A stretch of 64,000 nt of DNA from Epiperipatus broadwayi (lineage: Eukaryota > Animalia > Onychophora): the NCBI GenBank assembly GCA_028023455.1, contig JAQFVV010000010.1, positions 7,874,001-7,938,000 on the forward strand. Direction: 5' to 3'. Below the pieces are notes generated by a model, which made no database searches, was not told the DNA's origin, and saw nothing but the letters and a program-made list of their open reading frames with translations. Shown here piece after piece: positions 1-56,585 of the stretch (the stretch's first letter is position 1; each line of letters begins with the position of its first letter). Position numbers and translations under genes: made by a program.

Positions 1-108
1 CTGGCATCCATTGATTACTCTGTTTGGCACAGGGTGGCACTACTGTATGGAGAGTTTTGCCTTTGTTTACAACAATTATGTGCTAGTATAGAGATGGTGA
101 TCATGTGA
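1..108 (+). mobile_element. 3' end of an F1 hammerhead-repeat unit, cut by the window edge
   Basis: Matches the 3' part of the F1 unit seen at 2196-2266, 12296-12362 and 42100-42207 (ctggcatccattgattactctg...gagatggtgatcatgtgat). Confidence 0.9.
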
Positions 109-561
109 TATTATTTCTAATCATTGAAGCAATAAGCTTTGCAAATAGCAACTTTACTAGATCAATTATGACATCATATTTGAATTGTTAAAGCATTTGT
201 GAAATGTTTGATATTATTAATTTCAACAGCATGTAAACAGCTTTTATATTTAATTCATTATTTTACTGTAATAGATCTATCATAGGATCTTATTTGAATG
301 TTAAAGCATTAGCAAAATGTTTATTTGATATTTTTGCCATTTATTTTTCTATTCTATTACGAATCGAATTGCATTTAAAAATTGGCAACCAGAAAAGTAG
401 TCTTATTTGATAATTCATTACTTTAAACAAATAAATAATCAAACAAATTAATTGCTCAGGAATTTTTAAGTTTATCTTCAAGTGCTAGAACTGGATGCAA
501 TCCATAAACCTTAAATTTCAAAGTTTGCCATCTACAACTGTACAAAACCATACAGGATATA

Positions 562-5496: not shown

Positions 5497-5805
5497 ATAT
5501 AGGGGATTTGAACTCAGACTTTCAAGCCCCTTCACCATCCACACTATCTCATACGACTGATGCACATGACCACACACATGCAGAAAAGATAATCACCAAT
5601 ATATGTATTTTGTGCTAAACCAGCACTCATCAGTTGGTCTAGATTACCATCTCCCATACATATATATAATCAGTGCTCAGTTTATATTAAGATAGCAAAT
5701 CCTTACACTTTAATGGACAGGTTTCAATCTACTCCAACTCTTCAGCCATCCATACCATTGAAAGTCCGATGATAGAATTCCCAAATCCCATGCTGATGCA
5801 AATCT
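5497..5805 (-). mobile_element. F3 hammerhead-repeat insertion with TSD
   Basis: Exact 13-bp direct repeat TGATTAAAAATAA at 5484-5496 and 5806-5818. Homologous to the 1.6, 3.5 and 54.2 kb copies. Confidence 0.85.
5595..5638 (-). ncRNA. Type I hammerhead (F3) with a G12>A core mutation
   Basis: ACCAA-CTGATGA-GTGCT-GGTTT-AGCAC-AAAA-TACATATA^-TTGGT. Helix I extends GGTAATC/GATTATC beyond a TAG bulge. Confidence 0.75.
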
Positions 5806-6166: not shown

Positions 6167-6784
6167 AATAGTCAAAATAAGAGTCAAAGATCCAATTCAT
6201 AGATCACATGACCCTATCTCTTAAGCTTGTAAGTTATAAACAGTGAGGATTGCCACATGACCCTATCTCTTAAGCTTGTAAGTTATAAACAGTGAGAATT
6301 GCCAATTCCTCTACAAGCTTGTAGAGGAATTGGCAATCCTCACTGTTTATAACTTACAAGCTTAAGAGATAGGGTCATGTGATCCATGAATTGGATCTTT
6401 GACTCTTATTTTGACTATTTATAGTCTCTGCCAAAAGTCTTATGCAATTTTTATGTTGCTATGACTACTAATATATGGTATGGCTGAAGATCTATCAGCC
6501 CCATATAGCTATTTGAGTTGGATAGCTGGGTTTGAAGACATGTAGATGTCTGAAAATTTCAGATTTTCCACTCAATAGATAACTTTTAGATAAGTGATTG
6601 GCTTTGGGTTGGTATTTTTAGATCTAGTGTCTGAACCTACCCTGACACCTCTCTGAGGAGTGCCAAAGCACGAAACCATGGTCAGGGGTTTGGGGAGGGG
6701 TTCCTGACAGAGATATTTTAAGTGCTGGCTCTGGCTAAGCATTTATCATAAAGCTTGTAGAGGAATTGGCAATCCTCACCATTT
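6167..6784. mobile_element. F2 insertion: inverted arm (6167-6317) plus just over one forward unit (period 436 bp)
   Basis: aagcttgtagaggaattggcaatcctcac recurs at 6315 and 6751. Exact 14-bp TSD TTAAGCTTATCATA at 6153-6166 and 6785-6798. Confidence 0.92.
6647..6689 (+). ncRNA. Type I hammerhead ribozyme (F2), intact
   Basis: ACCTCT-CTGAGGA-GTGC-CAAA-GCAC-GAAA-CCATGGTC^-AGGGGT: helix I 6 bp, helix II 4 bp, palindromic ACCATGGT helix III, GUC triplet. Confidence 0.92.
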
Positions 6785-8952: not shown

Positions 8953-11856
8953 GAGTTCTAGCTAAGAATAGTTACTTATCCATTTACTGACCAATAATGA
9001 ATATTTAACTATTTGATTCCTAAATCTGAATAACAAATATGGAGGGAAAATAAATTTTAACTGGTTAAGATTAGAAGATAGTTTATAAACATGGCTTGTT
9101 ATTTTCTTTATAATCCATCTTAATGATGAAGTAACTATTATTTTAGGATGCAGCCTTAGGCATCAGAAATTATTATAATATAATTATAGAATACTAGAAT
9201 AAACATGTAATACTATATTGTGTATTTTCTTAAATACAGAGTTACTTAAGAAGTCATTTTATTCAAGCACAACAAAGGGATGAGTGTGAAATCAATCACA
9301 CAATGTCTACATAAATGTAAATTTATATTTGCTCTTTGTAAGATATCTAGGCAAAAGATTCTGTAATCAAGCAATAAAAATTAATCATTAATAGGATAAT
9401 TTCTGTTAGATCACACACCAATTTTTTATGTTTTATTCAAAAAAATAAAATCTTACATCACTTCATAAATCATCTTATTTTTAACAAATTCTTAGAAAAA
9501 AAAAGGAAACCAATTAAGAAGATATTTGATATATTAATTTGATATAAAACATTTGCAATTTCTTAACAAATAATTATTTTTTTAAGATTTTATTTTTTTC
9601 ATTCTTATATTAAATACTAACTTAAATACTTGTTTATAGCTTGATTATCCAAAGAATCTTTATTAATATCTGCATACTATGTACATGCTGTATTCAGTTA
9701 AAAAGTTGATCTTGCTGAAGTTTGAAAGTTCCAAATATGCAAAATAATATTAAGCCTTTATACAAAACATGTAGCTGAGTGTTAAAATAACTTGCTGGTT
9801 CAATTCCTGATAAAGTGGAAAACAACTTCAGTCTATAATAATTATTCGGATTATACTTCCCTCCTGTTCTTTTGAATGGTTTTATTCCAGTTTTTTTTCC
9901 TCTAGTTTTTAAAATTTCTTATTTTTTTTTTAAAAATAATGTGCATTAATAACAGTTTTCTTGGATTATAAGTTCAAAACAGTTAATATACATTTTGTGA
10001 TGAACAATTGCTTTGTAAGGATATTTAAGATTAATAATCTGTATTTCCACTCCTTAGCTTTGAATAGTTTATCCAAAAGGTCATAATCATATGATTCACT
10101 TAGGTTAGTAGAAGACCCAATTGTCATGAGCTTTTCATGTCATCAATCATCTCTTTGTACTAATTGTGATAATAAAATGGTGTGTTAATGCAACCACCTT
10201 TCATTGTTTAATTAGATCCACAGCAATTCTAATTCCAGTCTTTTCTTTTTTCTCTTTTTCTGAGTCAGAATGGCTCTAGTCTTACAAATGATTGCTAAAG
10301 ATAATTGATGACCTCAACTATCATTTTGATGCTCAAACTATTGACAATTTAATTTTAAAAAAAGCTTGTAAAAGGACATGATAATATTTTCATTATCTTT
10401 TTACACTAGCTTTAATTATTTTTACTTCTATTTAATGTCTTCTGCTAATTTTTCACTCAGAAGGTGATATCTGGTACATCTGCGTACACATTACTTTATA
10501 TTCCTAGTAACTATATTTTTTTGTAATGTTTTCGTATTTTTCTATAAAGACATGAAAAAACAATTGAATTTTTTACATTTTGCCTATTGATAGCGATTTA
10601 TTATCTTCAAATTTTTTTTTTTTTGCAGTTTTCTTGGTTTTTGTTTTTAATGAAGGAATAAAAAAGTTGTCTCAGAATCTTTACATTTAATGAAACTATT
10701 CCATCTTATACCAATATTGGAATTAAAATTTTTCACACTTGACATCATGATTGGACAAAGCTGATATGGAACTATTTGGTGATGTGCCTTATCGGATGTA
10801 GAGGTAGCAACAAAGTTTTTTAGTCTATAATGTAATCATTATTTAAATACAAACATATATATATAAATATATAGTAAAGTAGGTATGGATCATTCTTCAC
10901 TTTTAAAATATGTAAGTGGTGATGAAAGGCTAAATTGAGAAGAGATTAGGATGTTATCTAGTTATCATAAACATTTTCTATGCAATGCTCTAATATACTG
11001 AGTTAGTTTATGCAAAATGAGTCCCAATACAGCTAGTGGACCCACTCATCTATGTATATACATCGAAAGTTTGATGAGATTAAGTCAATTGTAGCATATC
11101 ACAATATTCTAATATATTAAACTAGAAAATAGCTTTGCCATTTTGTGATGTTGATTTTACTATAAAACTAAAGTGTTCTAGATATATTCATCTTAAGAAG
11201 GAATAAAAAGCAAAAAGTACCATATCCTTTTACAACTTTAAGATCAATATTTGTTAGCCTTTTTTTTCAAATGAGAGAAACTATTTTATTGCATCCATCC
11301 AAAATCATTTATTAACATTATTCAATTTAAATTAATAGCTTAAACTTTAAAAATTTGAATCCAAGATAACTTTCTTATTTATCAGTATTACATTGAAAAC
11401 AATTATATTTTGGTGATCTCAGTTGCAAGATATTAGCAGTCTTTTTAACGTAGGAGGGAATAGAAATCTTATAAAAATAAATTTTAATAATGCAGAATGT
11501 AACAAGATTAATTATAATATCAAATCATTTTATTTGATTATGCTAATAACAAATAGTTGTAAAAAAAAAAAAATAGTAACAAATATTTCAGCATGAAATA
11601 ATCATTATCTGTGCTATTTAATGCAAACAAAAAGTAAATACAAATTTAGTAAAAGAAATACTGGAACAATACTCTAGCATTCTAGACATAACCACTAAAC
11701 ATCACATGATCACTATCTCTTATACTAACACATAATTGTTAATAAACAAAGCAAAACTCTCCATACAATAGTGCCACCCTGTGCCAACCAGAGTAATCAA
11801 TGAAATGCCAGAAGGCTTGTGCATAAAATCCCTATCTAGTGCCTACTCATCCAATA

Positions 11857-11898
11857 TCCCCAGACTAGTTTCTGGCTTGTGGCCTTCGTCAGTGAGGA
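11857..11898 (-). ncRNA. Type I hammerhead (F1), intact core
   Basis: Reverse complement reads TCCTCA-CTGACGA-AGGC-CACAA-GCCA-GAAA-CTAGTC^-TGGGGA. Confidence 0.88.
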
Positions 11899-12207
11899 GC
11901 CTTGGATCTTAGAGCACTGCACCTAGATCTTAGAATCTAATGCAACCCTCCAGCAGCCACCTTTTAACTCTATTTAACTACAAAACTATGAGAATGAAAT
12001 TGAAAACACAATAATATTTTCAATCTAAGCTCAATAGCTTATATAGTCATATGGGTCTGAACTCAGTTCAGCACCCATACATTTTGGTGCCTTTGGCTCT
12101 TTAACAACCATAACCACCACTATCCTATTAGGCAGGATTGGTGTTAAATCACTAAACATCACATGATCACTATCTCTTATACTAGCACGAGCTCTCAGAT
12201 CCAAGGC

Positions 12208-12249
12208 TCCTCACTGACGAAGGCCATAAGCCAGAAACTAGTCAGGGGA
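12208..12249 (+). ncRNA. Type I hammerhead (F1), first helix I pair broken
   Basis: TCCTCA-CTGACGA-AGGC-CATAA-GCCA-GAAA-CTAGTC^-AGGGGA. Confidence 0.75.
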
Positions 12250-13199
12250 TATTGGATGAGCAGGTACTAGATAGGGATTTTATGCACAAGCCTTCTGGCA
12301 TCCATTGATTACTCTGGTTGGCACAGGGTGGCACTACTGTATGGAGAGTTTTGCCTTGTTTATTTACATAGTCAAGAATTCCAGCTGAAATTAAGCCCTG
12401 TCTTGTCAAAAGATAGTATATACTAAATAGGACTAGAGAATTTATTTATTAAATTATACATCTAATTAATACATAGTACATCTAAAACAGAATCTTGTTC
12501 TACATAAGTAAAACATCTTTTAAATATCTCATTGTAGGATAAAGATTTCTTCAACAGTGTATTATACATATCATAGCTTCGCTACAGTGCAGATCTTTTA
12601 ATAAAGAATGCTGCCTAGTTTCAATTCAGACTATCTTTTTTATATCTCAAATGAAATCTATTTTTCATCATTAGCAGTCTCTTATAAATAAGTATGACTA
12701 TTCTGATTTCAGAAAAGAATAAAAAAATTAAAAAGCAAGCAAAAAAAACAACAACTTTCGGTCAAAAATGTTGTGCATATAATTAAAAAAATGGAAATGT
12801 ACTTGCAAAAATACACAACTCTTTTGTCACTATCACAATGACCCAAGAAGGGATGAGTGGGCCTTGTACTAATCAAAGGCACTGAAGACAGTAATATAAA
12901 AAAAAATAGAAAGAGGAAAAAACAATGACAATTAATTGTAAAGATTAATCATTATTAACAAATTAATGTAATTAAAATACTAATTTATTGAATGAATTAT
13001 TTTTTAAAATTATCGTATACATTTCAATTTTTACATTATAGCTAGCACTACTAATATCAGTAATATTGAAAGATCGATACTTGATAACTTAGAATCAATT
13101 TCATCTGAAGTCCTTTTGGGGCTTAATTCATGTTAATCTTGATAACAAATATGAAGAATTCACAATGAATGAGTTGAATTATTCTCTGTAAAAGCTATT

Positions 13200-34833: not shown

Positions 34834-35961
34834 TATTAGTTATATCGTGAAGCATTTTTATTTTTTCATGCATTGATTAATTCTGATATAACATACTCCT
34901 TTATTTATAGGCTTTTGGTTTTTATATATAGTTTTTACATTATAAAGATTATCTCAAAATCATTATAGAGAAGTACAATGTCAATTGCTTCCATTGGGAA
35001 GATGTAGCAGAGGAGAAAATACATTGTAAAGATACAATTTGATATCATGTTGAATTATTTTAGAAAGAAAAGATTTCTGATGAAGAAATTAAAAGACAGC
35101 ATTATAAAATATTAAATAATTGGGAAAACAGACCAGCATGTTCCATATGTGGACATAGTTGTAGTTGACAGATTGGTTTGTATTGTTATTGCAAAACTCA
35201 TTTCAAAAGTAATTTTTTCTCTCTCTTCTTTCTTTTCTTTTTTTTTGAATTGGAATGACTTCACACATCTATGAGTGGCTGTTATTGTTAGTTGATATAT
35301 GTTATAAATGTTATGTACCATATGTATTTATGTGTTATAGTTCTGACAAAGATAGGTTTCATTAAGTTAAGAATAAGTTATTGCATTGTAAAAAGCTTAT
35401 AAAGAAAGAAAGATAATCGTGAAAAACTACTAACAGACATGACATAAAGTAGTAATTGATATTATTATGTCAGATTTTGCTTACAGTAATTTTTACATTC
35501 TTGTTAAAAAAAGATTATATTGAATTTATCAAACTTATATAAAAATATATCACATAATTTCATTGAATACTTTTTTTCTCATTTTTATTTGTTAAATAGT
35601 AGTGACCTTTCATAATTTGCTTATTTTTAAGTATTATTAAACTACTAAAAATTTATTTTAAATGCATTTACTAATGGTAACAAGTGAATGAAAAAATTTA
35701 GTACTTTACAATCAAAATAGTTTGTTTGTATGTATGTGACTTTAAAAGCATTACTTTTATTTGCAAATAGAGACAGGCATAACAAGAACAAAAATATACA
35801 TCCAATCACAAGAAAACGAAGAGATCATTCAATTCCATATACACCAATACCTGAACAAAGACTTTTAGTTTTTTTTTGTTCCAGAAAGCAGTCAACTAAT
35901 TCCAGTCAGAAAATATTCTAAATAAAATTAATTTTATTTCTTCATTTTTGCAATGTTATGG

Positions 35962-36882
35962 TTATGCCATGCAGTTATTTTCTGGACATGAAATATTATA
36001 TACGGCCTGAGAGGTGTTGTTGGGTGTTATAATGTCTTTGGTGTTATTAATAATTCTATTTGTATTAGGGGGTGTATGAAAGCTTAGTTGAAATTCTTTA
36101 TTAAACACTGAGTAAAACTTTCTATGGGTAGTTGCAATATATGGTAACAAAATTCTATTTTTCTGCTGCTTAATAACATTGCTGTTTAATTTACTGTAAA
36201 ATTGTCTAATCTTCCTATCAATTGTGTAATGCTTGAAGCCGAAATCTAATAAATCGTTTCTATATAAGATTAAGTTTGCCCTTTTGTCCGATTCAAATCT
36301 GCAAAGTTGCTCATTCCTATGCAAGAAAGACGTTAAACCAGCTAATTTATGAATAGAAGGCGTGTTTGAAGTAGGTTGAATATTGCCTCTTTTTTCTATT
36401 GGTTTTATAATCATTGTATAATTTAGTCTTTGATCCTCTCTTTGCACATACATATCCAAGTATTTAGTTTTCCCTTCACGATCTTCCATTTCTGTGTTTA
36501 GCTTCAGCTGTGTACTGTCTTGTATGTCCTGTTTAATTTTATCTATAATTTCTTCAGTAGCAGCGATGAAAAGGTCGTCAACGTATCTTGTGTATATAAT
36601 TAACTTAAGTGTTTGTTCGTATTTAGGAATAATACTTTTTTCAAAATAATTAAGTACGATACTTGAGATGATACCACTCATGGGTAATCCCATCGGCCAT
36701 CCATCGTTCATTTGGAAACATTGATTATTGAATGTTGCCACAATGTTGTTGTTAAGCCATTTTAAGAAATCGATTATGAAAGCTATCTTTTTTTGATCCA
36801 CGTCGTTGTTCATAAGCTCTTTTACTATATCGATGGACCTATTTCTATTAATTGATCCATATAACTCAGTGACATCAAGCAC
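35962..36882 (-). CDS. PLE reverse transcriptase core plus start of GIY-YIG (306-codon open fragment, inverted arm)
   Basis: LDVTELYGSI (motif A), GWPMGLPMSGIIS (B'), YTRYVDDLF (C), TKYLDMYV, and terminal AVYNISCPENNC. Confidence 0.85.
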   Translation of the reverse strand: MLDVTELYGSINRNRSIDIVKELMNNDVDQKKIAFIIDFLKWLNNNIVATFNNQCFQMNDGWPMGLPMSGIISSIVLNYFEKSIIPKYEQTLKLIIYTRYVDDLFIAATEEIIDKIKQDIQDSTQLKLNTEMEDREGKTKYLDMYVQREDQRLNYTMIIKPIEKRGNIQPTSNTPSIHKLAGLTSFLHRNEQLCRFESDKRANLILYRNDLLDFGFKHYTIDRKIRQFYSKLNSNVIKQQKNRILLPYIATTHRKFYSVFNKEFQLSFHTPPNTNRIINNTKDIITPNNTSQAVYNISCPENNCMA

Positions 36883-39659
36883 TGCAATTTTAGTTTCTGG
36901 GTTTAGAATTTTGTCCTTAATTCTGGCTACAAATTCAAATGAAGATTTGATAGTATATCTTCCAAATCCAATACTGTCAATCAGCCAACGATTTATTAAT
37001 TTAGCAGTGCTAAAATAATGTCACCCCAAAATCCAGCATTAAGCGTAAAGGAACATTTTTGTGCATTTTATTTGCAAAAATCCTGGTAGAATAGTGACAG
37101 AAGGATATAGTTTATATACTCCGTTTTTATACTTTACAAAATAAAATAAAACATTAAATTTATACAACTACAACAAGACCAATTTTAAAAGATGCAGCGA
37201 ATTTAAAATATTGCCGAATTTTTGTAATTTAAAAATAAACAAATCAATTTATAATCGATACAAGATTTGCAAACAAGTAAGTTTTTATCTGCTGAATTTG
37301 GTCAAAAGAGGATGTCAGAGTGCTCTGAGGAAACAGATTAAAAGGAAAAATAGAATGGTACAAGATGTATTAATACCTCAGTATATTAGGAATAAATGTG
37401 ATAAATTAAATATCATAATGCAAAAGAAATTTGAAAAAAGTTGGCGTTTTTAGCTAATAAGCAAAATATCCAAATTGTAGAAAAGAGGAACAATTTTTTG
37501 TTAATCTTACAGAAAAAACACCAAACGAGGAAATAATAGAGGTACTAAACAAAGGCCCTAGATTCGTTGGTAGCAATTGAGTTTCCTAAGTTTGAATTAA
37601 TAGCTGATATTGAAGCGGGTTTGAATAACAACCCAAATAAAGATATGTACGTAACGCAGATTGCCAAGACCATACACCAGAATACACTCAAGATTAATAC
37701 AAATAACTGGAATACAAAATTAGCGCACACTAAGAAATTTTTAGATACTGAACGAATAGTCTGCATGAAGGAAGATAAAGGCCAGAGATTTGTGCTTATG
37801 AGTAGAGAAAATTTTAACTTCAAAGTTAACCAGCAAATTGAAAAACTGCAATTCAAAAGAATAGCTAGTTTCAATAATAACTTGAACAAGGACAAATTTA
37901 TTGCCTCTATTCTCAAGACACATTGTAACAAAGCTATATCAAAAACGGAGTATTATAAACTATATCCTTCTGCCACTATTCTACCACTTTTTGCAAATGC
38001 AAAAATGCACAAACCCAATGTTCCTTTACGCTTAATGCTGGATTTTGGGGGTGACATTATTTTAGCACAGCTAAATTAATAAATCGTTGGCTGATTGACA
38101 GTATTGGATTTGGAAGATATACTATCAAATCTTCATTTGAATTTGTAGCCAGAATTAAGGACTAAATTCTAAACCCAGAAACTAAAATTGCAGTGCTTGA
38201 TGTCACTGAGTTATATGGATCAATTAATAGAAATAGGTCCATCGATATAGTAAAAGAAGAGCTTATGAACAACGACGTGGATCAAAAAAAGATAGCTTTC
38301 ATAATCGATTTCTTAAAATGGCTTAACAACAACATTGTGGCAACATTCAATAATCAATGTTTCCAAATGAACGATGGATGGCCGATGGGATTACCCATGA
38401 GCGATATCATCTCAAGTATTGTACTTAATTATTTTGAAAAAAGTATTATTCCTAAATACTAACAAACACTTAAGTTAATTGTATTCACAAGATATGTTGA
38501 CGACCTTTTCATCGCTGCTACTGAAGAAATTATAGATAAAATTAAACAGGACATACAAGACAATACGCAGCTGAAGCTAAACACAGAAATGGAAGATCGT
38601 GAAGGGAAAACTAAATACTTGGATATGTATGTGCAAAGAGAGGATCAAAGACTAAATTATACAATGATTATAAAACCAATAGAAAAAAGAGGCAATATTC
38701 AACCTACTTCAAACACGCCTTCTATTTATAAATTAGCTGGTTTAACGTCTTTCTTGCATAGGAATGAGCAACTTTGCAGATTTGAATCGGACAAAAGGGC
38801 AAACTTAATCTTATATAGAAACAATTTATTAGATTTCGGCTTCAAGCATTACACAATTGATAGGAAGATTAGACAATTTTACAGTAAATTAAACAGCAAT
38901 GTTATTAAGCAGCAGAAAAATAGAATTTTGTTACCATATATTGCAACTACCCATAGAAAGTTTTACTCAGTGTTTAATAAAGAATTTCAACTAAGCTTTC
39001 ATACACCCCCTAATACAAATAGAATTATTAATAACACCAAAGACATTATAACACCCAACAACACCTCTCAGGCCTATATAATATTTCATGTCCAGAAAAT
39101 AACTGCATGGCATCATACTATCGGGAACGAAAGCAACTCTTTCTACAAGACTATCCCAGCACAGATATTCTTACAATAAGGCCCAAGTAGACCCAAATTG
39201 CAACTCAATATTTGCAATACATCAGAAATCAGCTGGTCATGCATGTGAACCTAAAAATGCAAGAATAGTTTGCAGGGAGAGAAATGACATTAAGAGAAAA
39301 GTTAAAGAAGCATGTTTTATTGCTATTGAGGATAAGGCTATGAATAGGAAAGATCCGTGTTACAAAATCTCTAAGAAATGGATCATTTAGAGCTGACGCA
39401 TTTATTTTCAACTAATTTACATATATCAGCATATTTTAGCATATACCAACACGCTATGCTTATTCTTTGTTGCCCATGATTATGAGAGCTAAGTTCTCTT
39501 GAAAGCCCTCGGCCATTATTCTTTAGATATTATAATTATTTTAAGTTTATAATATATTGTTATTTAATCCTGATGAAGCTCGGTTGTTGTGCGCATATTT
39601 GCGCATTAAAATTATATATATATGTATAGTAAGCACCTGAGTTTAATAATTTCTTTTTA
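35967..39659. mobile_element. Penelope-like element (PLE) with a ~1.16-kb inverted duplication at its 5' side
   Basis: 35964-37128 is the reverse complement of 37951-39113. RT motifs and a GIY-YIG domain are present. 16-bp TSD CAATGTTATGGTTATG at 35951-35966 and 39660-39675. Confidence 0.93.
37150..39390 (+). pseudogene. Disrupted PLE ORF: N-terminus, RT and GIY-YIG endonuclease
   Basis: Fragments 37211-37453, 37567-38079, 38193-38462 and 38589-39179. Hand-repaired C-terminus: YNISCPENNCMASY-IG..RLSQH..SIFAIHQKSAGH..RKVKEACFI..MNRKD..KKWII*, with stop at 39388-39390. Confidence 0.88.
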
Positions 39660-40785
39660 CAATGTTATGGTTATGTTTTTTGAATTTTTTATACAAATAT
39701 TATAATATTTATTTAAAACTTAATATGCTTGACACATATAATGAAATTAAAATTCATTTAATTGAAATAATTCTTCATCACACCTTAGTGCTTTCCGAGA
39801 TTCTCTCCATAATCATAGCCTTTAACTGTAATAATTTATGCAAGTTCATTCGGATAGTCCATCTTTTCGAAATAGAATAAAAATTAATTTGGAATGACAA
39901 TTATATAAAACAAATACTTTTCTTAGAAGCAATACGAGATACCATGTGGAGCATTTATGTTAACTACCTTCAACTAAAAATCATGTCATTAAAAATTTAA
40001 TTATTAATAAATAAATTGTAATTAGTTTACTTTATTTATTTATTAATAAATTAAAATTAATATTCAGCATTTAATTTTTAAATTTATTATTATCTTATTA
40101 GATTTTACAGTATTAAAAATATAATTATAATGAAGTAAATATTAATTCTTATTAAGCGCGATGTCAGCATGTAATACTTCTATAAGGCTAAAACCTTAGT
40201 ACATGCACCTTGAATGCTTAATTTTAGCAAGAGAGACCTCTACAAATCATAATGCAATTTTAAGAATCACCTTGCACTCCATGAGCATCGACTTTAAAAG
40301 CATAAGGGTAAGCTTACACTTAGGGTTTATTTATATATAAACCAGTCTTTGCTCATCATGCTGAAATAGGGCTTGAATCTATTATGTGTCTGAATTATGT
40401 ATTATTAATTTAATTGGATAAATCTTATTTATTACTAAAAATGATAAAAATAATATTTATTCAATTAAAATTTAGATTTTTTTTTTTAAAATTAACATTT
40501 TAAATAATATAAAATTAACCATTAAGATGAAAGAAATAATAAAAGGCAGAAGTTAGTAGGTTATACAGATAATAGTTTTTTAAAAAAATAAGGGTCATTA
40601 TTAAAAACAAACGTTATGCTTTAATAAATCAAGAATAAATTAATAGGTTATAAGATTTGATATTTTAATATACTTTTGCACAATTAGTTTCTTTTTATAT
40701 TTGATATTAATATTTCAAATGAGGATTAATTTATTTACAAAGTGACAATTTATTTAATAGAATTTTACAACTAGTATTTGTAAAT

Positions 40786-41224: not shown

Positions 41225-41615
41225 TATTTGTAAATAAAATGAATTATATTACTTATTTCAACCAACTAAATAGCAATTAATTGGAGTAATCACCTCATAT
41301 TAGAAATAATTTTTTTAAAAATTGACTAAATTAAACAATTATCAGATCAATAATAATATTAATAGCAACTGGTTTTGGTTTTTAGCTAATTGATTTTCAT
41401 TTGGAAGAAAATATTGTACTAATTTATTTTAATTCTTTAAATATTAGATAAACCATTAAGCATCACATGATCACATTTGCTATACTAGCACATTAATTGT
41501 TGATAAACAGAGCAAAACTCTCCATACAGTATTGCCATCTGTGCTAAACAGAGTAATCAATGGATGCCAGGAGGCTTGTGCATAAAATCCCTATCTAATG
41601 CCTACTCATCCAATA

Positions 41616-41657
41616 TCCCCAGACTAGTTTCTGGCTTGTGGCCTTCATCAGTGAGGA
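41616..41657 (-). ncRNA. Type I hammerhead (F1), intact core
   Basis: Reverse complement reads TCCTCA-CTGATGA-AGGC-CACAA-GCCA-GAAA-CTAGTC^-TGGGGA. Confidence 0.88.
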
Positions 41658-42011
41658 GCTTTGGATCTGAGAGCACTGCATCTAGATCTTAGGATCTAAT
41701 GCAACCCTCTAGCAACCACCTTTTATCTCTACTTAACTACAAAACTATGAGAATGAAATTGAAAACACCAATCCTGCCTAATAGGATAGTGGTGGCTATG
41801 GTTGTAAAAGAGCCAAAGACACCAAAATGTATGGGTGCTGAACTGAGTTCAGACCCATATGACTATATAAGCTATTGAGCTTAGATTGAAAATATTTTTT
41901 GTGTTTTCAATTTTATTCTTATAGTTTTGTAGTTAAGTAGAAATAAAAGGTGGTTGCTAGAGGGTTGCATTAGATCCTAAGATCTAGATGCAGTGCTCTC
42001 AGAACCAAAGC

Positions 42012-42053
42012 TCCTCACTGATGAAGGCCACAAGCCAGAAACTAGTCTGGGGA
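42012..42053 (+). ncRNA. Type I hammerhead (F1), intact core
   Basis: CTGATGA core; predicted cleavage after C42047. Confidence 0.9.
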
Positions 42054-42456
42054 TATTGGATGAGTAAGCATTAGATAGGGATTTTATGCACAAGCCTTCT
42101 GGCATCCATTGATTACTCTGTTTAGCACAGGTGGCAATACTATATGGAGAGTTTTTAACAATTAATGTGCTAGTATAGGAAATGTGATCATGTGATGCTT
42201 AATGGTTTAACACCAATCCTGCCTAATAGGATAGTGGTGGCTATGGTTGTAAAAGAGCCAAAGACACCAAAATGTATGGGTTCTGAACTGAGTTCAGACC
42301 CATATGACTATATAAGCTATTGAGCTTAGATTGAAAATATTTTTTGTGTTTTCAATTTCATTCTCATAGTTTTGTAGTTAAGTAGAGATAAAAGGTGGTT
42401 GCTAGAGGGTTGCATTAGATCCTAAGATCTAGATGCAGTGCTCTCAGATCCAAAGC

Positions 42457-42498
42457 TCCTCACTGACGAAGGCCACAAGCCAGAAACTAGTCTGGGGA
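42457..42498 (+). ncRNA. Type I hammerhead (F1), intact core
   Basis: CTGACGA core; predicted cleavage after C42492. Confidence 0.9.
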
Positions 42499-43665
42499 TA
42501 TTGGATGAGTAGGCATTAGATAGGGATTTTATGCACAAGCCTTCTGGCATCCACTGATTACTCTGTTTAGCACAGGTGGCAATACTGTATGGAGAGTTTT
42601 GCTCTGTTTAAATATTAGATATCTTTTAATATTCACTAAGTTGCTGATAGATAATTATCTTTCTCAATTTTACCAGATATGACCAATTTCAGTTCTGCAT
42701 ACACGAATGGGTTTTGAATATATGATATCTTCCAATCGAACCACATTTTATTCTAAGCTTTTTCTAACTGATACTTAAAATCATCCATAATAGCAAACCA
42801 TCTATAATTTACATGTTCAGCATATTAATATTTATTTTGAGATTTAAAGTTTGTATCTAACTTAATGATAATCCTACCTTAAAAAATGGTTAGTAATAAT
42901 CATTAAGGTATTTATCTGAAAGAATTGGTGACAAAATTGTGACTGCAAAAAGTTTGACATATATAAAATTAAAGTGTAATATATACACACACATACATTT
43001 ATAATGCAATTTAATTTTTGAAAGGTACAAAATAATTAACATATTTATGAATTTAAATTTATAATTTCCTAATTTTGTATTTTATTTAATATTTTTTTAA
43101 ACTGTAGGTTACTAAAACTGATAATGATAAATCCACATTCATGGAGATATTTCTGTATATTTAAAATATAACCTCATCTAGCATTAGAAACATTTAAGCA
43201 TATTTGGTAATATGAAAATAATTAGTGAACTGTATATTATTTCTTAATAAAACAATTATTCTTTTAATGGGCTCATTAAGAAATTTTAAATATCGCAAGA
43301 GTAGAATTGTGTAGAATATTGTCTAAGCTACCACTAATGATGATCAAGTATTTTGCTAAAATGTAATGTATTGCTTCCTTATAGTCTAATATTGGTCAAG
43401 AACTTAATACATCCAAAAGCTGTTGAATGGATCTAATTGCTTTATCAGTTTAGTAACTGTGATAATATTAGCCATTTTTTAAAGTAAAGATAAATGGGAA
43501 ATCTTCACTAGGCACACAAATTTTTTAAAAAAATATTAGTATCTCATATAAAACAAAACAATAACATAATTGATGAATAGTAATTTAAAGATGTCGTATT
43601 ATTTCATAGACATTATTCATTAATTATAAATATTTTTATTTTATTTTAACAACAATAACATACTA

Positions 43666-46459: not shown

Positions 46460-48114
46460 TATATATAACATTTATAATACAAGCTTACTAAATTAGGTCA
46501 TGTGACATCTGATTTGATTTTTTTTTTTTTTGTAATATAATGTCAATAAATGTTTGATACCAAAGTAACAAAAGATCATTTGCTAATTGTAAAAGATTTG
46601 AAAATATATCTTACTTTGTGTAAAATATGTATTTAATTTATATATATATATATTATTTGGTCAGAGATATCTAATATATAAATACATATACACAGTAAAC
46701 ATTGCTCGAATTACTTCACTAGGCAAAAAAAAGTGAAATAAAACAACAAATAAATAACATTTAATTTTACCAAAGCAATTTATTGATCAGAAAAAAAAAA
46801 AACAGAATCACGTCAAAGCAATGACCATCTCACCATAAAATATAGTGCCAAGTGAAAAAGATTTACTTGTGATAACATCCTGGGTAAAAAAAGATTACTT
46901 GAAATTAATATTGGCCAATATTTACATTGATTAGTTTTAGAGTGGTTATAAAGAAATTAATGTCATCTAATACAGATTGAATGAGAACTAACATTTTTGT
47001 AATGATAAAATATCATAGTTGTTTTTTGGTTTGAAACTTTAGAATATTAAACAGTTTCAAACTATTTGCAAGACTAATATAAAATAAAATATGCAATTGG
47101 AGCTAGAAATCAGTTACAAGAGTGTAAGAGAACAGACATCTGATGTACTGCTTACATAGATTGGATATGAGAACATTATTAAGTAATGTAGATAAAATTT
47201 GAACAAAAAAAATCATATATTTGCTTTGTTTAAATCAAAGATGCAGACTGCAAATTTACCAGTTTGAATACCTATATATTAAATAAGCATTAAGCCTCCA
47301 CCAGATGGCAATGACATCTCCCTGAACTCACAATAAAATTTGAATTCAGTTCATTAACTTTTCAAGTTAGATCATTCTGAAATTATTTCAAAATTTAAAT
47401 ATTTTAGTAATTTAAATTATCAGCCTACTGTTTCAACTTAACTCTATTAGGCCTGCAAACCTTTTTAAAATCTGTAAAAGAATGCTCTATGGCTTTCATA
47501 AATGATACTATGCTTTCATATAATAATAATAATAATCCCTTCTCTTATTCCAAGAGTGTTAAAATAGTCTACATTTGATAAATAAGTTTAAATAAAAACA
47601 AATAATTATAAAAAACATTGTCTTACTAAAATCATTTTTCATTTAAGTAGAACAGAAGTTACTAAACTTAAAGATTTGTGGTTATATATTTTTAAGAATA
47701 TGTAAAAAGCCTTAAGAAAATTTTAATTTTTAGTCTAATGCTAATTTATCACTGTATCTTTGCAGAAACTCATTTCTAATTCTAACATCATTGTTGGCAG
47801 CCATTTGCAAATGAGTATTATTGTTCCAATTCCAAAAAAAAAAAAAAGACAACACTAATATATTAGAATTGAATTTTGAAATAACTTTACAAACTTTTGA
47901 TTGAAGACATTTTTATACTCCCTAATTCTGGCACTAATCTATTTGATTGACTCACATAGTTTCTCGAATGCTATGAACATGAAATTTAGTATTCTAAAAG
48001 TACTTGGTCTTTAGGTTTATGGAAAAAATCAATTTTTTTGCTAGTGGAAAAGATAGTTTTAATATTGAAATTATATAGTTTTCTACTTGATATATCAATG
48101 ACTGTTTTAATATA

Positions 48115-49637
48115 CTACTGAACATCATATGATCATCATCTCTTATGTTAGCACATAACTGTTATTAAACAGGCAAAACTCTCCATACAATAGTGCCACC
48201 CTGTGCCAAACAGAGTAATCAATGGATGCCAGAATGTAAAATCCCCATCTAGTGCCTACTCATCTAATATCCCCAGACTAGTTTCTGGCTTGTGCCCTTC
48301 GTCACTGATGAGTCTTGGGTCTGAGAGCACTGCATCTAGATCTTAGGGTCTAATGCAACCCTACATTAGCCACCTTTTATCTCTATTTAACTACAAAACT
48401 ATGAGAATGAAATTGAAAACAATAATATTTTCAATCTAAGCTCAATAGCTTATATAGTCATATGGGTCTGAACTCAATTCAGCACCCATACATTTTGGTG
48501 TCTTTGGCTCTTTAACAACCATAGCCACCACTATCCTATTAGGCAGGATTGGTGTTAATCTACTAAACATCACATTATCACCATCTCTTATGCTAGCACA
48601 TAAGTGTTATTAAACAGGCAAAACTATCCATAGAGTAGTGCCACCCTGTGCCAACCCAAATAATCAAAGGATGGCAGAAGGTTTGTGCATAAAATCCCCA
48701 TCCAGTGCTTACTTATCCAATTTCCCCAGACTAGTTTCTGGCTAGTGGCCTTCATCAGTGAGGAGCCTTGGATCTAAGAGCACTGCACCTAGATCTTAGG
48801 ATCTAATGCAACCCTCCAACAGCCATCTTTTATCAACTATGAGAATGAAATTGAAAACACAATAATATTTTCAATCTAAGCTCAATAGCTTATAAGAACC
48901 AAAGACACCAAATATATATGGGTTCTGAACTGAGTTCATACCCATATGACTATATAAGCTATTGAGCTTAGATTGAAAATATTATTGTATTTTCAATTTC
49001 ATTCTCATGGTTTTGTAGTTAAGTAGAGATAAAAGGTTGCTGCTGGAGGATTGCATTAGATCCTAAAATCTAGGTGCAGTGCTCTCATAACCAAGGCTCC
49101 TCACTGACGAAATCCACAAGCCAGAAACTACTCTGGGGATATTAGATGAGTAGGCACTGGATGGGTATTTTATGCACAGGCCTTCTGGAATCCATTGATT
49201 ACTCTGGTTGGCACAGGGTGGCACTACTGTATGGAGAGTTTTGCCTGTTTAATAACAGTTATATGCTAGCATAAGAGATGGTGATCATGTGAGGTTTGGT
49301 AGTTTAACATCAATCTTGCCTAATTGGATAGTGGTGGCTATTGTTTTTAAAGAGCCAAAGACACCAAAATGTGTGGGTGCTGAACTGAGTTCAGACCCAT
49401 ATGACTATATAAGCTATTGAGCTTAGATTGAAAATATTTAGTGTTTTCAATTTCATTCTTATAGTTTTGTAGTTAAGTAGAGATAAAAGATGCTGCTGGA
49501 GGGTTGCATTACATCCTAAGATCTAGGTGTAGTGCTCTCAGATCCAAGGCTCCTCACTGATGAAGGCTACAAGCCAAAAATTAGTCTGGGGATATTGGAT
49601 GAGTAGACACTGGATGGGGATTTTTTGCACAAGTCTT
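48115..49637. mobile_element. F1 cluster: two tandem minus units plus two tandem plus units, head to head
   Basis: HHR positions 48270 and 48723 (minus) and 49098 and 49551 (plus), period 453 on both sides. Inversion junction at about 48894. No TSD found. Confidence 0.92.
48723..48764 (-). ncRNA. Type I hammerhead (F1), the only intact core in this cluster
   Basis: Reverse complement reads TCCTCA-CTGATGA-AGGC-CACTA-GCCA-GAAA-CTAGTC^-TGGGGA. Confidence 0.85.
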
Positions 49638-51000
49638 CAGGCATATAAAACAACTTTATAAGTAGGTGAGCTATCAATTCTATCATTTTTTTCCTTTTTA
49701 GTATCAGTCATAGTAAAGCTTTATATATAATAGAGTTAAATATTTTTGGTTAGTGCTGTTTCTTGAGGAAGATGATCTTTATCAGACAAACTATATGCTC
49801 TCATCAAAACATCTTTTTACCACAGTAAATATATAAATAGGATGATAATGAAAATTAAAATTGAGATATCTGTTTTTATTTTAATAAATGAATACTTATA
49901 AAGAGTCATAAGATTTTCTAGCAATTAAACTACCTAAAAAAGAAAATGTTCTGTTATTTTCAACTATATTAGGATGCCATTCATTAAAAAAAAAAGAATT
50001 CCAAGGCATTTACATATACCATGAAGCTATATAATAAAGGTATCATCCACATATCTGAGCCATATAGAAAGTCCCTTGATTATCAAAATTATTCATGAAG
50101 AAATCAGCAATTACAGATAATGGTTGAAAGCTCATAGAAAGTCCTTTAATTTGCTTATATTTTTGAAAATCATGAATAAAAAGTATATTTTCAAAGCAAT
50201 GTTTTCCATTGGAATAATAAAATGTGGTAAATTATTACATTAAACTATTATAGATAAAGCTTGTTCAACAAGAACACTGGTAAACATAGAGGAGATGTCA
50301 AAAGAACTAATAAATCACTTTTAGCTAGCTTTAAGTTTTTTAGTAATAGAAGTAAAATGAACTGAGTTTTGAATTCTGGATGGAATCTTATCTGCCAATG
50401 GTTGTAAGCATTGGGCTAAAAATTGAGCCCAAAAATGTGTGGGAAAACCTATAGCACTCACAATCTCAATTGTACCTCAGGTTTATGAATTTTAGATAAA
50501 CGATAAAATTTAGAGTATAATGAAAATAAAACATAACAGTTCTTCATTAAGACCTTAACAATGAGGATAAATGTTATTTCCTTGAAACATTGGAAATTAA
50601 TACAAAATAATACAAGATATAAACCAAATAAGATTTTACCCTCATCATGTAATTGTGAAAATATTGAATATAATGCTTACATATTTATACATATGCTTTT
50701 GTTTTAATAACATACCGATTTATAATAATTTTTCAAAAGTAATCATTTTTTTCTTTACATTTATAACTGAAACATTTTTCTAGAGATAGATAAGACATTA
50801 ATCATTGTTGGGACAATGAAGAAGACTTTATTCATCAGGTTCAGAAATTTCTAGGTATAAGAATTTGGATGATTTTTATCCGTTTTATATTCCAGGTAAG
50901 AATAACTAGATGCCAATTTATTGGTGAATATTAGATGGATTATTAGCTGTCTATAGAGTAACTGCTGGAAAGAAAAATCATAACCCTTATCAAAACCAGA

Positions 51001-51496
51001 TGACAGAAGGATATGATGCCACTGATCTATAAGACCTCTTCTTACATATATATTGTCACCTTACAGATGCTTCTGTAAATTGGCTATATTTAAAAACTGT
51101 AAAAATTTTATTGCTTTATTTTTTATAGTCAAGCAAATATATTCAGTGCTGCCATTGGTTGAATAGCATCTTATATAATCAAGATCAAGTTGAAAAGTAG
51201 TCAAAATAAGCATCATAGATCACATGACCCTATTCTCTTAAACTTGTAAGTTGACAGAAGGAAATGATGCTACTGATCTATAAGACCTCTTCTTACATAT
51301 ATATTGTAACCTTACAGATGCTTCTGTAAATTGGCTATATTTAAAAACTGTAAAAATTTTATTGCTTTATTTTTTATAGTCAAGCAAATATATTCATTGC
51401 TGCCATTGGTTGAATAGCATCTTATATAATCAAGTTGAAAAGTAGTCAAAATAAGCATCATAAATCACATGACCCTATTCTCTTAAACTTGTAAGT
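51001..51496. repeat. Tandem duplication, period 251 bp (flank plus the end of an F2 element)
   Basis: tgacagaagg...aacttgtaagtt starts at 51001 and again at 51252. Confidence 0.92.
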
Positions 51497-51708
51497 TATA
51501 AACAATGAGGATTGCCAATTCCTCAACAAGCTTTGTGATGAATCCTTGGCCAGAGAAAGCATTTAAAATATCTCTGTCAGGAACAGCCTCAACCCTTGAC
51601 CATGGTTTCATGCTTTGGCACTCCTCAGAGAGGTCACAGGGTAGGGTAGATCTAGTGTCTGAACCTACCCTGGCACCTCTCTGAGGAGTGCCAAAGCATG
51701 AAACTATG
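51441..51708. mobile_element. F2 insertion: minus arm (51441-51650) plus short forward arm (51651-51708)
   Basis: Matches the 562-920 and 6167-6784 copies. The forward arm stops inside the HHR, just before the cleavage site. Confidence 0.88.
51592..51634 (-). ncRNA. Type I hammerhead (F2), intact core, one helix I mismatch
   Basis: Reverse complement reads ACCTCT-CTGAGGA-GTGC-CAAA-GCAT-GAAA-CCATGGTC^-AAGGGT. Confidence 0.8.
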
Positions 51709-55074: not shown

Positions 55075-55284
55075 ATCACATGATCACCATCTCTTATACT
55101 AGCACATAATTGTTATTAAACAAGGCAAAACTCTCCATACAGTAATCCCACCTGTGCCAACCAGAGTAATCAATGGATGCCAGAAGGCTTGTGCCAGAAA
55201 CTAGTCTGGGGATATTGGATGAGTAGGCACTGGCATCTATTGATTACTGTGGTTGGCACAGGGTGGCAAGTATGGAGAGTTTTA
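55075..55284. mobile_element. Small F1 inverted composite containing half an HHR
   Basis: Minus arm 55075-55193; plus arm from gccagaaactagtctgggga to 55284. Possible imperfect TSD TCACT(G/A)CAT(A/G)T at 55064-55074 and 55285-55295. Confidence 0.85.
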
Positions 55285-56367: not shown

Positions 56368-56585
56368 CATGTGTCATAGCATCGGCCGGGAAAGCGAACC
56401 CGCTAACCCGGGACAACTGCTTGTAAGGCAGCTGTGCTGACCTCTCGACCACCAACGCTTGACTAATTTTTTAATTTTTTTTTTTCTCCATGTGTCATAG
56501 CATCAGCTGGGAAGCGAACCTGCTAACTGGGGACAACTACTTGCAAAGCAGCTGTCACTGACCTCTCGACCACCAATGCTTGACT
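56368..56585 (-). mobile_element. Two tandem copies of the tRNA-Gly-derived SINE (period 121 bp)
   Basis: Reverse complement agtcaagcgttggtggtc...gctgccttacaagcagtt...gggttagcgggttcgcttt..cccggccgatgctatgacacatg at 56368-56464 and 56489-56585. Confidence 0.88.

Follow-up and report, generated by a model that had tools for sequence, protein, structure and literature searches.

A stretch of 64,000 nucleotides from the genome of the onychophoran Epiperipatus broadwayi, referred to below as the window, contains several copies of a short repeat, F1, that carries a hammerhead ribozyme motif. An initial annotation took F1 for a non-LTR retrozyme, which raises the questions of what kind of element F1 is, how its copies come to be inserted, and whether the ribozyme plays any part in that process. 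A BLAST search of the window with the F1 unit recovered copies at 1-109, 1857-2268, 11690-12368, 41449-42610, 48111-49644, and 55075-55283, the same six places that had been named earlier. The family unit is 456-457 bp long, with 38.8% G+C. The copies do span the range of 445-457 bp originally given, with the lower figure contributed by one unit carrying a private deletion. That unit length had also been placed at the long end of the retrozyme size range; at 456 nt, F1 falls inside the published range, not beyond it (150-450 bp in PMC7229834; 51-972 bp in bioRxiv 10.64898/2026.07.22.740005). The unit was said to lack an ORF, and we agree that it is non-coding: a trimer of the unit, read in every frame, had no stop-free stretch longer than 61 codons, and no ORF was found in the 40 F1 loci examined (28 young and 12 older).

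Besides the copy at 41.5 kb, which is described below, the window contains the following:

1-109, plus strand: long end of an F1 arm, truncated at the edge of the window (BLAST)
1857-2268: older F1 insertion with two arms; hammerhead at 2114-2143 with a U-A allele at positions 10.1/11.1
11690-12368: F1 insertion with two arms and two hammerhead motifs, ~93% identical to the young subfamily
48111-49644: older two-arm F1 insertion, ~88-89% identity; three of its four hammerhead motifs are damaged
55075-55283: short F1 fragment consisting of two arm ends, without a hammerhead (BLAST)

Scanning the window for the hammerhead motif produced 11 matches, compared to 0.22 expected by chance. Ten of these are in F1, and the remaining match, at 5716-5745, belongs to another family. 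The core is intact in seven of the ten F1 hammerheads (2114, 11863, 12214, 41622, 42018, 42463, and 48729) and damaged in the other three (48276, 49104, and 49557), where "intact" is judged by the motif only and the Rfam type I model gives these sequences no score. The seven intact cores differ from one another at N7 only (C or T), as the initial annotation had claimed. The hammerhead string it reported proved exact when we re-read the sequence, and helix I does extend as a long imperfect stem.

The copy at 41.5 kb is exactly one composite F1 insertion of 1156 bp, bounded by a target-site duplication (TSD), and has the following parts:

41451-42606: complete F1 insertion, two head-to-head arms with 3' ends outward
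41436-41450: left TSD copy, about 11-15 bp with an edge ambiguous by a few bases; the identical 15-nt string is found at both flanks
42607-42621: right TSD copy
41451-41771, minus strand: inverted arm with a 5' truncation, covering unit positions 307-456 followed by 1-173; the tail is at its outer end, the "long" one
41764-42606, plus strand: direct arm, unit positions 173-456, a full unit, and 1-118 (1.9 units); its outer end is the "short" one, without the tail
41616-41657, minus strand: hammerhead motif including the 6-bp helix I; core 41622-41651; U at N7 (motif scan)
42012-42053, plus strand: hammerhead motif; core 42018-42047; predicted cleavage after C42047; U at N7 (motif scan)
42457-42498, plus strand: hammerhead motif; core 42463-42492; predicted cleavage after C42492; C at N7 (motif scan)
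42041-42046, plus strand: self-complementary ACUAGU, A15.1 to U16.1 (read from the sequence; architecture as in PMC4209133 and PMC7229834)
42155-42157, plus strand: private deletion of 11 nt at this point, removing unit positions 108-118 (comparison of young units)
42178-42196, plus strand: tail motif (...GTGATCATGTGAT), where long arms end

We conclude that 41451-42606 is one young insertion of F1. Its two arms overlap by ~8 bp at the inner junction. The middle unit is 445 bp long solely because of the private 11-nt deletion, which is carried by 1 of 47 young units and stops exactly at the short start site of reverse transcription. When compared with 47 genomic units, the units of this locus had no rare private variants in common, only singletons and the common C/T variation at N7.

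The same anatomy is found elsewhere in the genome. The layout was scored in every young locus that lay complete within its edges, and F1 arms always occurred as inverted pairs, with an inverted, 5'-truncated copy and a partial tandem lying within one TSD. The term "tandem repeat", used for F1 originally, therefore suits the units within an arm, which run head to tail, but not the loci, which are head-to-head composite insertions. Arms range from 0.1 to 4.6 units in length, with a spacing of 456 bp and a variable inner junction. Of the other genomic loci, 26 allowed both outer ends to be scored, and all 26 had one short end and one long end, a pairing with a chance probability of ~1.5e-8 if the ends were independent and each type equally frequent. 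The short end maps to unit positions ~114-131 by BLAST, but its true place is ~118-119 nt past the site of hammerhead cleavage. The long end lies at unit positions 159-174, or 40-55 nt beyond the short end, and it alone has the tail. Each arm retains, 118 nt before its 3' end, a hammerhead site that was left uncut. The TSDs are AT-rich, with a median length of 13 bp across 27 loci.

Head-to-tail units are also what an ordinary satellite or tandem repeat expanding by unequal crossing-over would produce, a reading to which we give next to no weight. F1 copies are dispersed over many contigs and have inverted arms and defined ends, and each sits in unique AT-rich DNA with a TSD of its own, a finding that refutes the satellite reading. 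Internal junctions between units were precise to the base in 46 of 47 cases, with one scarred. Pairs of units from the same locus had a mean of 1.65 rare alleles in common, versus 0.036 for pairs from different loci, and this held for units in opposite arms. Because the units of one insertion share rare variants even across its arms, both arms come from one template lineage. The tail motif is AAGAGATAG-G-TCATGTGAT, and a ~21-nt version of it is common to F1 and the otherwise unrelated family F2, as would be expected for a common recognition site of the reverse transcriptase (RT).

This locus layout is the published insertion signature of Penelope-like elements (PLEs). PLE hallmarks, according to PMC8557442 (text and Fig. 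2 legend), are a copy that is inverted and truncated at its 5' end, partial tandems, and a tail of 30-40 bp, often confined to one end. In addition, a PLE protein studied in purified form cuts both strands of AT-rich DNA and extends them, and the two internal sites at which it initiates reverse transcription bracket the tail (PMC11167929). Thus, F1 is very probably a PLE-mobilized, hammerhead-bearing, non-autonomous element.

Such a signature could also arise if F1 were not a separate element but belonged to an autonomous, full-length PLE, either as its terminal repeat (pLTR) or as its 3' end after heavy 5' truncation. The 5'-truncated PLE insertions described in PMC8557442 likewise lie head to head with a tail at one end, and pLTRs are the normal seat of hammerheads (PMC4209133). 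However, a truncated 3-kb element would continue into coding sequence, not into another 456-nt copy, and the 28 young and 12 older loci consist of 456-nt units alone, up to 4.6 of them, with precise junctions and no ORF segment. The genome has more than 110,000 candidate places for a PLE RT, with intact ORFs of 764-817 aa, and from these we sampled three families: the PLE in the window (35951-39675) with 20 copies, an 817-aa family, and a 795-aa family. Neither sequence similarity to F1 nor the TCATGTGAT tail motif was found in these three intact families, sampled from the >110,000 RT candidates. Two 10-nt matches within a PLE ORF were dismissed as chance. The initial annotation had itself raised the prospect that the unit might be merely the terminal repeat of a full-length PLE; given 40 loci without an ORF and a unit unlike the three sampled families, we did not find this to be the case and regard it as very unlikely.

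The F1 hammerhead has the core CUGA(U/C)GA ... GAAA ... UC, with predicted cleavage after C17, and all of the invariant core positions are present (C3, U4, G5, A6, G8, A9, G12, A13, A14, A15.1-U16.1, and C17). It has three helices in a type I topology, with helix I open. Helix I is UCCUCA/UGGGGA, 6 bp with one G-U; helix II is GGC/GCC; and helix III is a single base pair, closed in the monomer by a palindromic CUAG loop. A palindromic loop 3 is a documented dimer design (PMC4209133, PMC7229834), and in a dimer it is possible that ACUAGU forms a 6-bp helix III. When two hammerhead segments were co-folded thermodynamically, the product was a domain-swapped dimer that did not specifically contain this helix III, and we rest no conclusion on it.

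The G10.1-C11.1 pair that closes helix II is highly conserved among hammerheads, but not invariant. It is absent from the main F1 allele, which has an A.A mismatch at 10.1/11.1 and is present in 38,024 exact copies, as measured by counts of 30-mers across the genome. By the same measure, an allele with U-A at 10.1/11.1 has 7,100 exact copies and one with A-U at 10.2/11.2 has 6,550, while the half-changed intermediates between G-C and A-U in helix II have only 1,330 and 950. Judging from these counts, A-U at 10.2/11.2 is an inherited compensatory allele that replaced G-C, and the inherited helix II alleles are ones that keep or restore pairing. In the three common alleles counted, changes were confined to N7 or to helix II pairs.

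A search with the Rfam hammerhead models had been proposed as a check on F1, and here the motif found no backing. Hammerhead_1 (RF00163) gave no F1 match at the gathering score or at E ≤ 10, either in the whole window or in short stretches of 91-101 nt, and the positive control, F2 at 6647-6689, scored 34.3 bits (E = 1.6e-7; gathering score 34). We attribute the blindness of the model to the A.A mismatch at 10.1/11.1 together with the 1-bp helix III. As the core is complete and the F2 control barely reaches threshold, we do not count the null result against the F1 motif.

The missing Rfam match, the mismatch at the base of helix II, and the single-bp helix III would, along with the low in vitro activity of the minimal hammerheads of PLEs (PMC4209133), suit a hammerhead-like string that is decayed or arose by chance, has no catalytic history, and is kept as part of an RNA structure recognized by the RT. 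We consider this improbable given the complete invariant core, the right helices and type I topology, the fit of loop 3 to the dimer design, and the three common alleles, which touch N7 or helix II only and preserve or restore pairing. Moreover, a retrozyme hammerhead from axolotl with a comparable mismatch, U.U, at the helix II base does cleave, and does so better as a dimer (PMC7229834). On balance, we lean toward a hammerhead that, to go by its sequence, is or was catalytically used.

The RNA of an F1 unit is predicted to fold into a stable rod (MFE -152 kcal/mol, z = -6.9), in which there is one compensatory change from A-U to G-C. In contigs from four coded organisms, depth was greatest at the hammerhead module, and N7 was the sole variable core position among those listed. 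Among young genomic F1 copies, we found no extra conservation of the core, a result that is expected for dead, neutrally decaying copies and is thus uninformative. The F1 matches in sequencing runs were Logan contigs only, for which the RNA type is a guess; they came as ~150-nt pieces, thousands in number and from both strands, and resemble DNA sequenced at low coverage.

The dispersed, TSD-flanked, multi-unit insertions, with a core in each unit and the PLE signature, support the original proposal of a non-coding, hammerhead-bearing non-LTR retrozyme. We hold it to be probable that F1 is a non-autonomous element of this type, copied in trans by a PLE RT/GIY-YIG endonuclease. Each locus reflects a single integration event with a ~13-bp AT-rich TSD, in which both nicked target strands primed cDNA synthesis, giving a head-to-head pair of arms whose 3' ends face outward. 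One arm begins at a fixed site 118-119 nt past the cleavage site and the other 40-55 nt further on (159-174), such that the two different start sites leave the tail at one end only. Each arm runs back over 0.1 to 4.6 units before stopping at a variable inner junction.

Before insertion, multi-unit transcripts may be cut to 456-nt monomers, with two hammerheads pairing as a dimer or with help from the PLE protein. The monomers would fold as rods and be circularized, probably by a host RtcB-type ligase, and the unit-length RNA could be reiterated during reverse transcription, through rolling-circle copying or repeated template switching, to generate the multi-unit arms. That the template of F1 insertion is a circular RNA seems to us quite possible, though somewhat on the doubtful side. 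The complete scheme, in which an F1 insertion results from double target-primed reverse transcription of one unit-length, probably circular RNA, with the two strands starting at different internal sites and copying round and round, we put forward as a tentative proposal that is rather unlikely to hold in full.

The same PLE machinery could also work on F1 with the hammerhead and RNA circles having no role in mobilization. Here, the templates would be unprocessed linear transcripts slightly longer than one unit, and the RT, on reaching the 5' end of one RNA, would jump to the internal start of another, as is assumed for the partial tandems of autonomous PLEs. A scar at just 1 of 47 internal junctions, with the rest base-precise, does not sit well with such jumps, whereas the 11-nt deletion at the exact short start is what imprecise re-initiation would leave behind. 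Similarly, the uncleaved hammerhead site in each arm, 118 nt from its 3' end, and a main allele that has A.A at 10.1/11.1 and no Rfam match are in keeping with an unused ribozyme, but co-variation in the helix II alleles and in the rod pair keeps or improves pairing, and across the four organisms the hammerhead module is the best-kept part. Work on other elements also points both ways. For the one PLE studied in vitro, hammerhead mutants left insertion unaffected, and the cleavage site was not the end point of any RNA-seq read (PMC11167929), which counts against use of the ribozyme; related animal retrozymes, however, have been found experimentally to give circular RNA (PMC7229834). We regard mobilization without the ribozyme as a minority possibility of some weight.

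F1 is a further, well-documented family of a kind of element already described in animals, not a new kind. Like the metazoan non-LTR retrozymes (Cervera & de la Pena 2020, PMC7229834; Li, Clavereau & Pollet 2026, bioRxiv 10.64898/2026.07.22.740005), it has short, non-coding, low-GC units with one type I hammerhead each, arranged head to tail, with TSDs longer than 4 bp and a rod-like unit RNA, and it likewise co-occurs with PLEs at very high copy number. Unlike their long arrays, F1 forms short composite insertions with two inverted arms of at most ~5 units each in our sample; it also differs in the A.A of its main hammerhead allele. The satellite-2 hammerheads of axolotl and newt (PMC7229834) come close in architecture: HHR_Amex1 has a 1-bp helix III with a palindromic tetraloop, HHR_Amex2 has a non-Watson-Crick pair at the base of helix II (U.U, versus A.A in F1), and both these hammerheads and that of F1 are expected to work as dimers. 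F1 differs from satellite-2 in its invertebrate host, its loops, its length (456 nt versus 330-350 nt), and its lack of a score with the Rfam type I model. In the AT-rich host genome, the best COX1 copy, apparently a mitochondrial gene lodged in nuclear DNA, reads in an invertebrate-type mitochondrial code, and a 109-aa piece matched relatives at no more than 87% identity.

With PLEs (Craig et al. 2021, PMC8557442; Frangieh et al. 2024, PMC11167929; Cervera & de la Pena 2014, PMC4209133), F1 shares the inverted, 5'-truncated copy beside a partial tandem, the tail at one end, a pair of internal sites past the hammerhead at which the RT starts, targets that are AT-rich, and the use of both strands as primers. 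In contrast to PLEs, F1 has no RT/EN ORF, its tail is ~40-55 nt and not 30-40, and its short/long pairing is strict in our sample, whereas in vitro the start site of a PLE showed no difference between strands. The plant LTR retrozymes (Cervera et al. 2016, PMC4918200) are, like F1, non-autonomous and hammerhead-bearing and are thought to propagate via circular RNA. Unlike F1, they have type III hammerheads in true LTRs, PBS/PPT signals, 4-bp TSDs, and high GC, and are mobilized by Ty3/gypsy elements.

The initial annotation had called F1 abundant, and the genome-wide count bears this out. In the 5.6-Gb genome there are ~54,000 F1 hammerhead 30-mers, either exact or with one change, and a 30-mer located downstream in the main older F1 subfamily has another 94,234 matches; control patterns in these 30-mer counts gave no chance matches. 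As a rough estimate from the motif counts, F1 and its sister families probably make up ~1% of the genome. Covariance-model annotation with Rfam thus misses ~50,000 plausible hammerheads in a single genome.

Animal non-LTR retrozymes have been tied to Penelope-like elements only recently, and F1 is a very large, young, and cleanly structured addition to them. Its strict anatomy and tens of thousands of copies make it a good natural substrate for studying PLE integration, and it is well suited to asking if a minimal hammerhead of the dimer type can still cut despite a mismatch at the base of helix II. If F1 is indeed copied round and round from a circle, its tens of thousands of young insertions would be a natural data set with which to settle the matter of tandem and inverted PLE copies, and would represent the first genomic evidence, in an animal, of rolling-circle reverse transcription of a ribozyme circle. 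As for the resident PLEs, the relatives of the PLE protein are at no more than 27% identity, some of them from mosquito, and the 817-aa family has a tRNA-like module ahead of its own hammerhead-like motif.

The locus at 41451-42606 carries three hammerhead-like motifs of F1, a family of ~456-nt non-coding units, and all three read directly as UCCUCA-CUGA(U/C)GA-A-GGC-CACAA-GCC-A-GAAA-CUAG-UC^UGGGGA. The 320 bp on its left mirror the right-hand part as a reverse complement, with the 3' ends of both arms pointing outward, and a direct, AT-rich target-site duplication (TSD) of 13-15 bp places the computed element edges at exactly 41451 and 42606.

Layout of the F1 locus, with unit positions in nucleotides downstream from the predicted hammerhead cleavage site
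41622-41651, minus strand, core of F1 hammerhead-like motif, read from sequence
42018-42047, plus strand, core of F1 hammerhead-like motif, read from sequence
42463-42492, plus strand, core of F1 hammerhead-like motif, read from sequence
Minus arm, minus strand, from unit position 307 past the cleavage site to 173
Plus arm, plus strand, from unit position 173, across a complete unit, to 118

We conclude that the locus is a single insertion and not a simple tandem array. The tandem repeat described in the initial annotation is correct inside the arms, where units run head to tail, but the locus as a whole is an inverted, two-arm, TSD-flanked insertion. The family unit is 456-457 bp, and the middle unit here is 445 bp only through a private 11-nt deletion. 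Other parts of that annotation held: a pattern scan gave 11 motif matches in the window, 10 of them F1, where shuffled sequence would give 0.22; a BLAST search of the window with the unit returned the same six places; the core varied only at N7 among the seven intact F1 copies in the window; and the unit lacks an ORF, the longest open stretch in a unit trimer being at most 61 codons.

We then compared F1 insertions across the 5.6 Gb assembly, fetching 30 of the best matches (95-96% identity). All 30 were made of two head-to-head arms whose inner junction varied, with 0.1-4.6 units per arm and precise 456-bp unit junctions; over 27 loci the median TSD was 13 bp. Each of the 26 independent loci scorable at both ends combined one short arm, ending at about unit position 118-119 (...GCUCUGUUUAU), with one long arm that stops at 159-174 (...GUGAUCAUGUGAU, with or without GCUUAAUGGUUUAA); 26 mixed pairs have a probability of ~1.5e-8 if each end were an independent 50:50 choice. 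An older F1 subfamily (~80-90% identity) had the identical layout in 12 loci.

Insertions of Penelope-like elements (PLEs) are 5'-truncated partial tandems, often beside an inverted 5'-truncated copy, with a 30-40 bp tail that is frequently at one end only (Craig et al., PMC8557442). A purified PLE protein was shown to cut both strands of AT-rich DNA, to extend them, and to initiate reverse transcription at two adjacent internal RNA sites, ~90 nt 3' of the hammerhead, the tail being the sequence that separates both start sites (Frangieh et al., PMC11167929). This whole signature is present in F1, although F1 has no ORF. The predicted consensus fold puts the short start in the unpaired apex of a hairpin located 3' of the hammerhead, with the long start at that hairpin's 3' foot. 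Candidate PLE reverse transcriptase (RT) places in the genome number more than 110,000, and intact PLE ORFs of 764-817 aa occur in at least three families; the PLE families sampled yielded no autonomous F1 partner.

A tail motif of ~21 nt (AAGAGAUAG-G-UCAUGUGAU) occurs both in older copies of F1 and in F2 (6167-6784), another hammerhead-like family with no other relation to F1. This sequence may serve as a shared site of RT recognition or initiation. As AAGAGATAG-G-TCATGTGAT (~21 nt), the motif was found in F1 and F2 as well as in at least one other element (17796).

Window positions of the tail motif
42178-42196
6375
6211
11709
12166
1884
17796

A very young PLE family, at 35951-39675 and in further genomic loci (L043-L062), has intact ORFs of 764-793 aa that are 98-99% identical in protein and frequently occurs as inverted pairs; its ends are unlike the F1 or F2 tails. 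Another PLE family, tandem and with intact 817-aa ORFs (L063, G000:C12487:1211100-1212100), has a tRNA-like segment containing A- and B-box-like parts that follows the ORF stop and precedes a hammerhead-like motif.

Pairs of F1 units shared on average 1.65 rare alleles within an insertion versus 0.036 between loci. Sharing extended to opposite arms, and at one locus (L020) four rare alleles were in all three units. Because a variant arises in one unit, yet is found in all units of both arms, these sequence patterns imply one putative template per insertion, through a unit-length bottleneck with subsequent reiteration or, alternatively, gene conversion afterwards. Such sharing would result from a circular monomer copied by rolling circle, or from repeated switching among identical monomers. 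No rare-allele sharing was seen at 41451-42606, where the segments differ from the most common family sequence by singletons alone, so this locus is uninformative on a single template. Its 11-nt deletion (42155-42157, middle unit) ends exactly at the short start site, the only such case among 47 internal junctions; it is the type of scar that re-initiation would leave but, as a single case, is not decisive. Across 50 units, both of the largest indels fall at functional sites: this one and a junction at ~1500 in locus L019 missing ~50 nt that span the hammerhead and the first 12 nt past the cleavage site.

Every invariant core position is present in the F1 hammerhead. Helix I is 6 bp, helix II has three Watson-Crick pairs over an A.A mismatch at 10.1/11.1, and helix III is a lone A15.1-U16.1 pair closing a palindromic CUAG loop, through which two copies could pair as a 6-bp ACUAGU duplex. 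The same dimer design is described for metazoan type I and PLE hammerheads (PMC4209133) and recurs in axolotl retrozymes, one class of which cleaves despite a U.U mismatch at the helix II base and does so better in dimeric form (PMC7229834). The F1 motif gave no Rfam match at any threshold, in the whole window or in short stretches; the nearby F2 motif scored 34.3 bits against Hammerhead_1. With its core complete and Rfam silent, F1 is, as judged from sequence, a hammerhead by core and topology that is an outlier for the curated model.

Genome-wide exact 30-mer counts
A.A at 10.1/11.1: 38,024 copies
U-A at 10.1/11.1, mismatch closed: 7,100 copies
10.2/11.2 G-C to A-U: 6,550 copies
Half-changed intermediate: 1,330 copies
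Other half-changed intermediate: 950 copies

Reversed control patterns had zero matches. Thus, among the alleles counted, the three common, inherited ones change only at N7 or helix II pairs, and pairing is kept or improved. In the long stem extending helix I, aligned young and older copies also differ at both bases of one pair (A-U to G-C), and the 446-nt unit RNA is predicted to form a rod (-152 kcal/mol, z = -6.9 versus shuffles). In Logan contigs from four organisms, whose RNA label is guessed and which are fragmented like low-coverage DNA, depth peaks over the F1 hammerhead and its immediate flanks, and N7 is the sole variable core position among those listed. Together, these patterns are evidence that RNA structure may well have mattered for propagating F1 lineages. 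Young genomic copies showed no extra conservation of the core relative to the rest of the unit; this parity is expected of dead copies and is neutral either way.

In behavior, and on the criteria that can be tested, F1 passes as a metazoan non-LTR retrozyme, as initially proposed, a kind of element currently interpreted as a non-autonomous PLE derivative (bioRxiv 10.64898/2026.07.22.740005). By analogy, we infer that F1 would be transcribed, cleave itself, and yield circular RNA. Its size lies inside the published range, and the abundance originally noted was borne out (38,024 exact 30-mer matches for the A.A allele). F1 is distinguished by this very high copy number, the strict pairing of one short and one long arm, the helix II allele series (A.A / U-A / A-U), and invisibility to Rfam. 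The element is of an already described kind, and the family itself is new.

F2 (6167-6784; also 889 and 51227-51706) is an unrelated hammerhead retroelement, head-to-head and TSD-flanked like F1. Its motif is more canonical, with G10.1-C11.1 and an 8-nt palindromic helix III (ACCAUGGU); the Hammerhead_1 match appeared only for a short stretch and did not come up when the whole window was searched with the gathering score as cut-off. A third hammerhead-like family, F3, lies at 5716-5745 and fits the F1 pattern with 3 mismatches. The sole Rfam match in the window at the gathering score was tRNA-like (56378-56458, minus strand, 35.7 bits) with a 13-nt T-arm insertion, and may represent a tRNA-derived SINE head rather than a tRNA gene. 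Elsewhere, at least 97 COX1-like pieces with in-frame TGA codons are scattered over nuclear contigs (for example, C2:8155834-8157171 in the host assembly, G000). One COX1 copy uses a mitochondrial code of the invertebrate type and is at most 87% identical to its best database relatives; the scattered pieces probably represent mitochondrial DNA copied into the nucleus.
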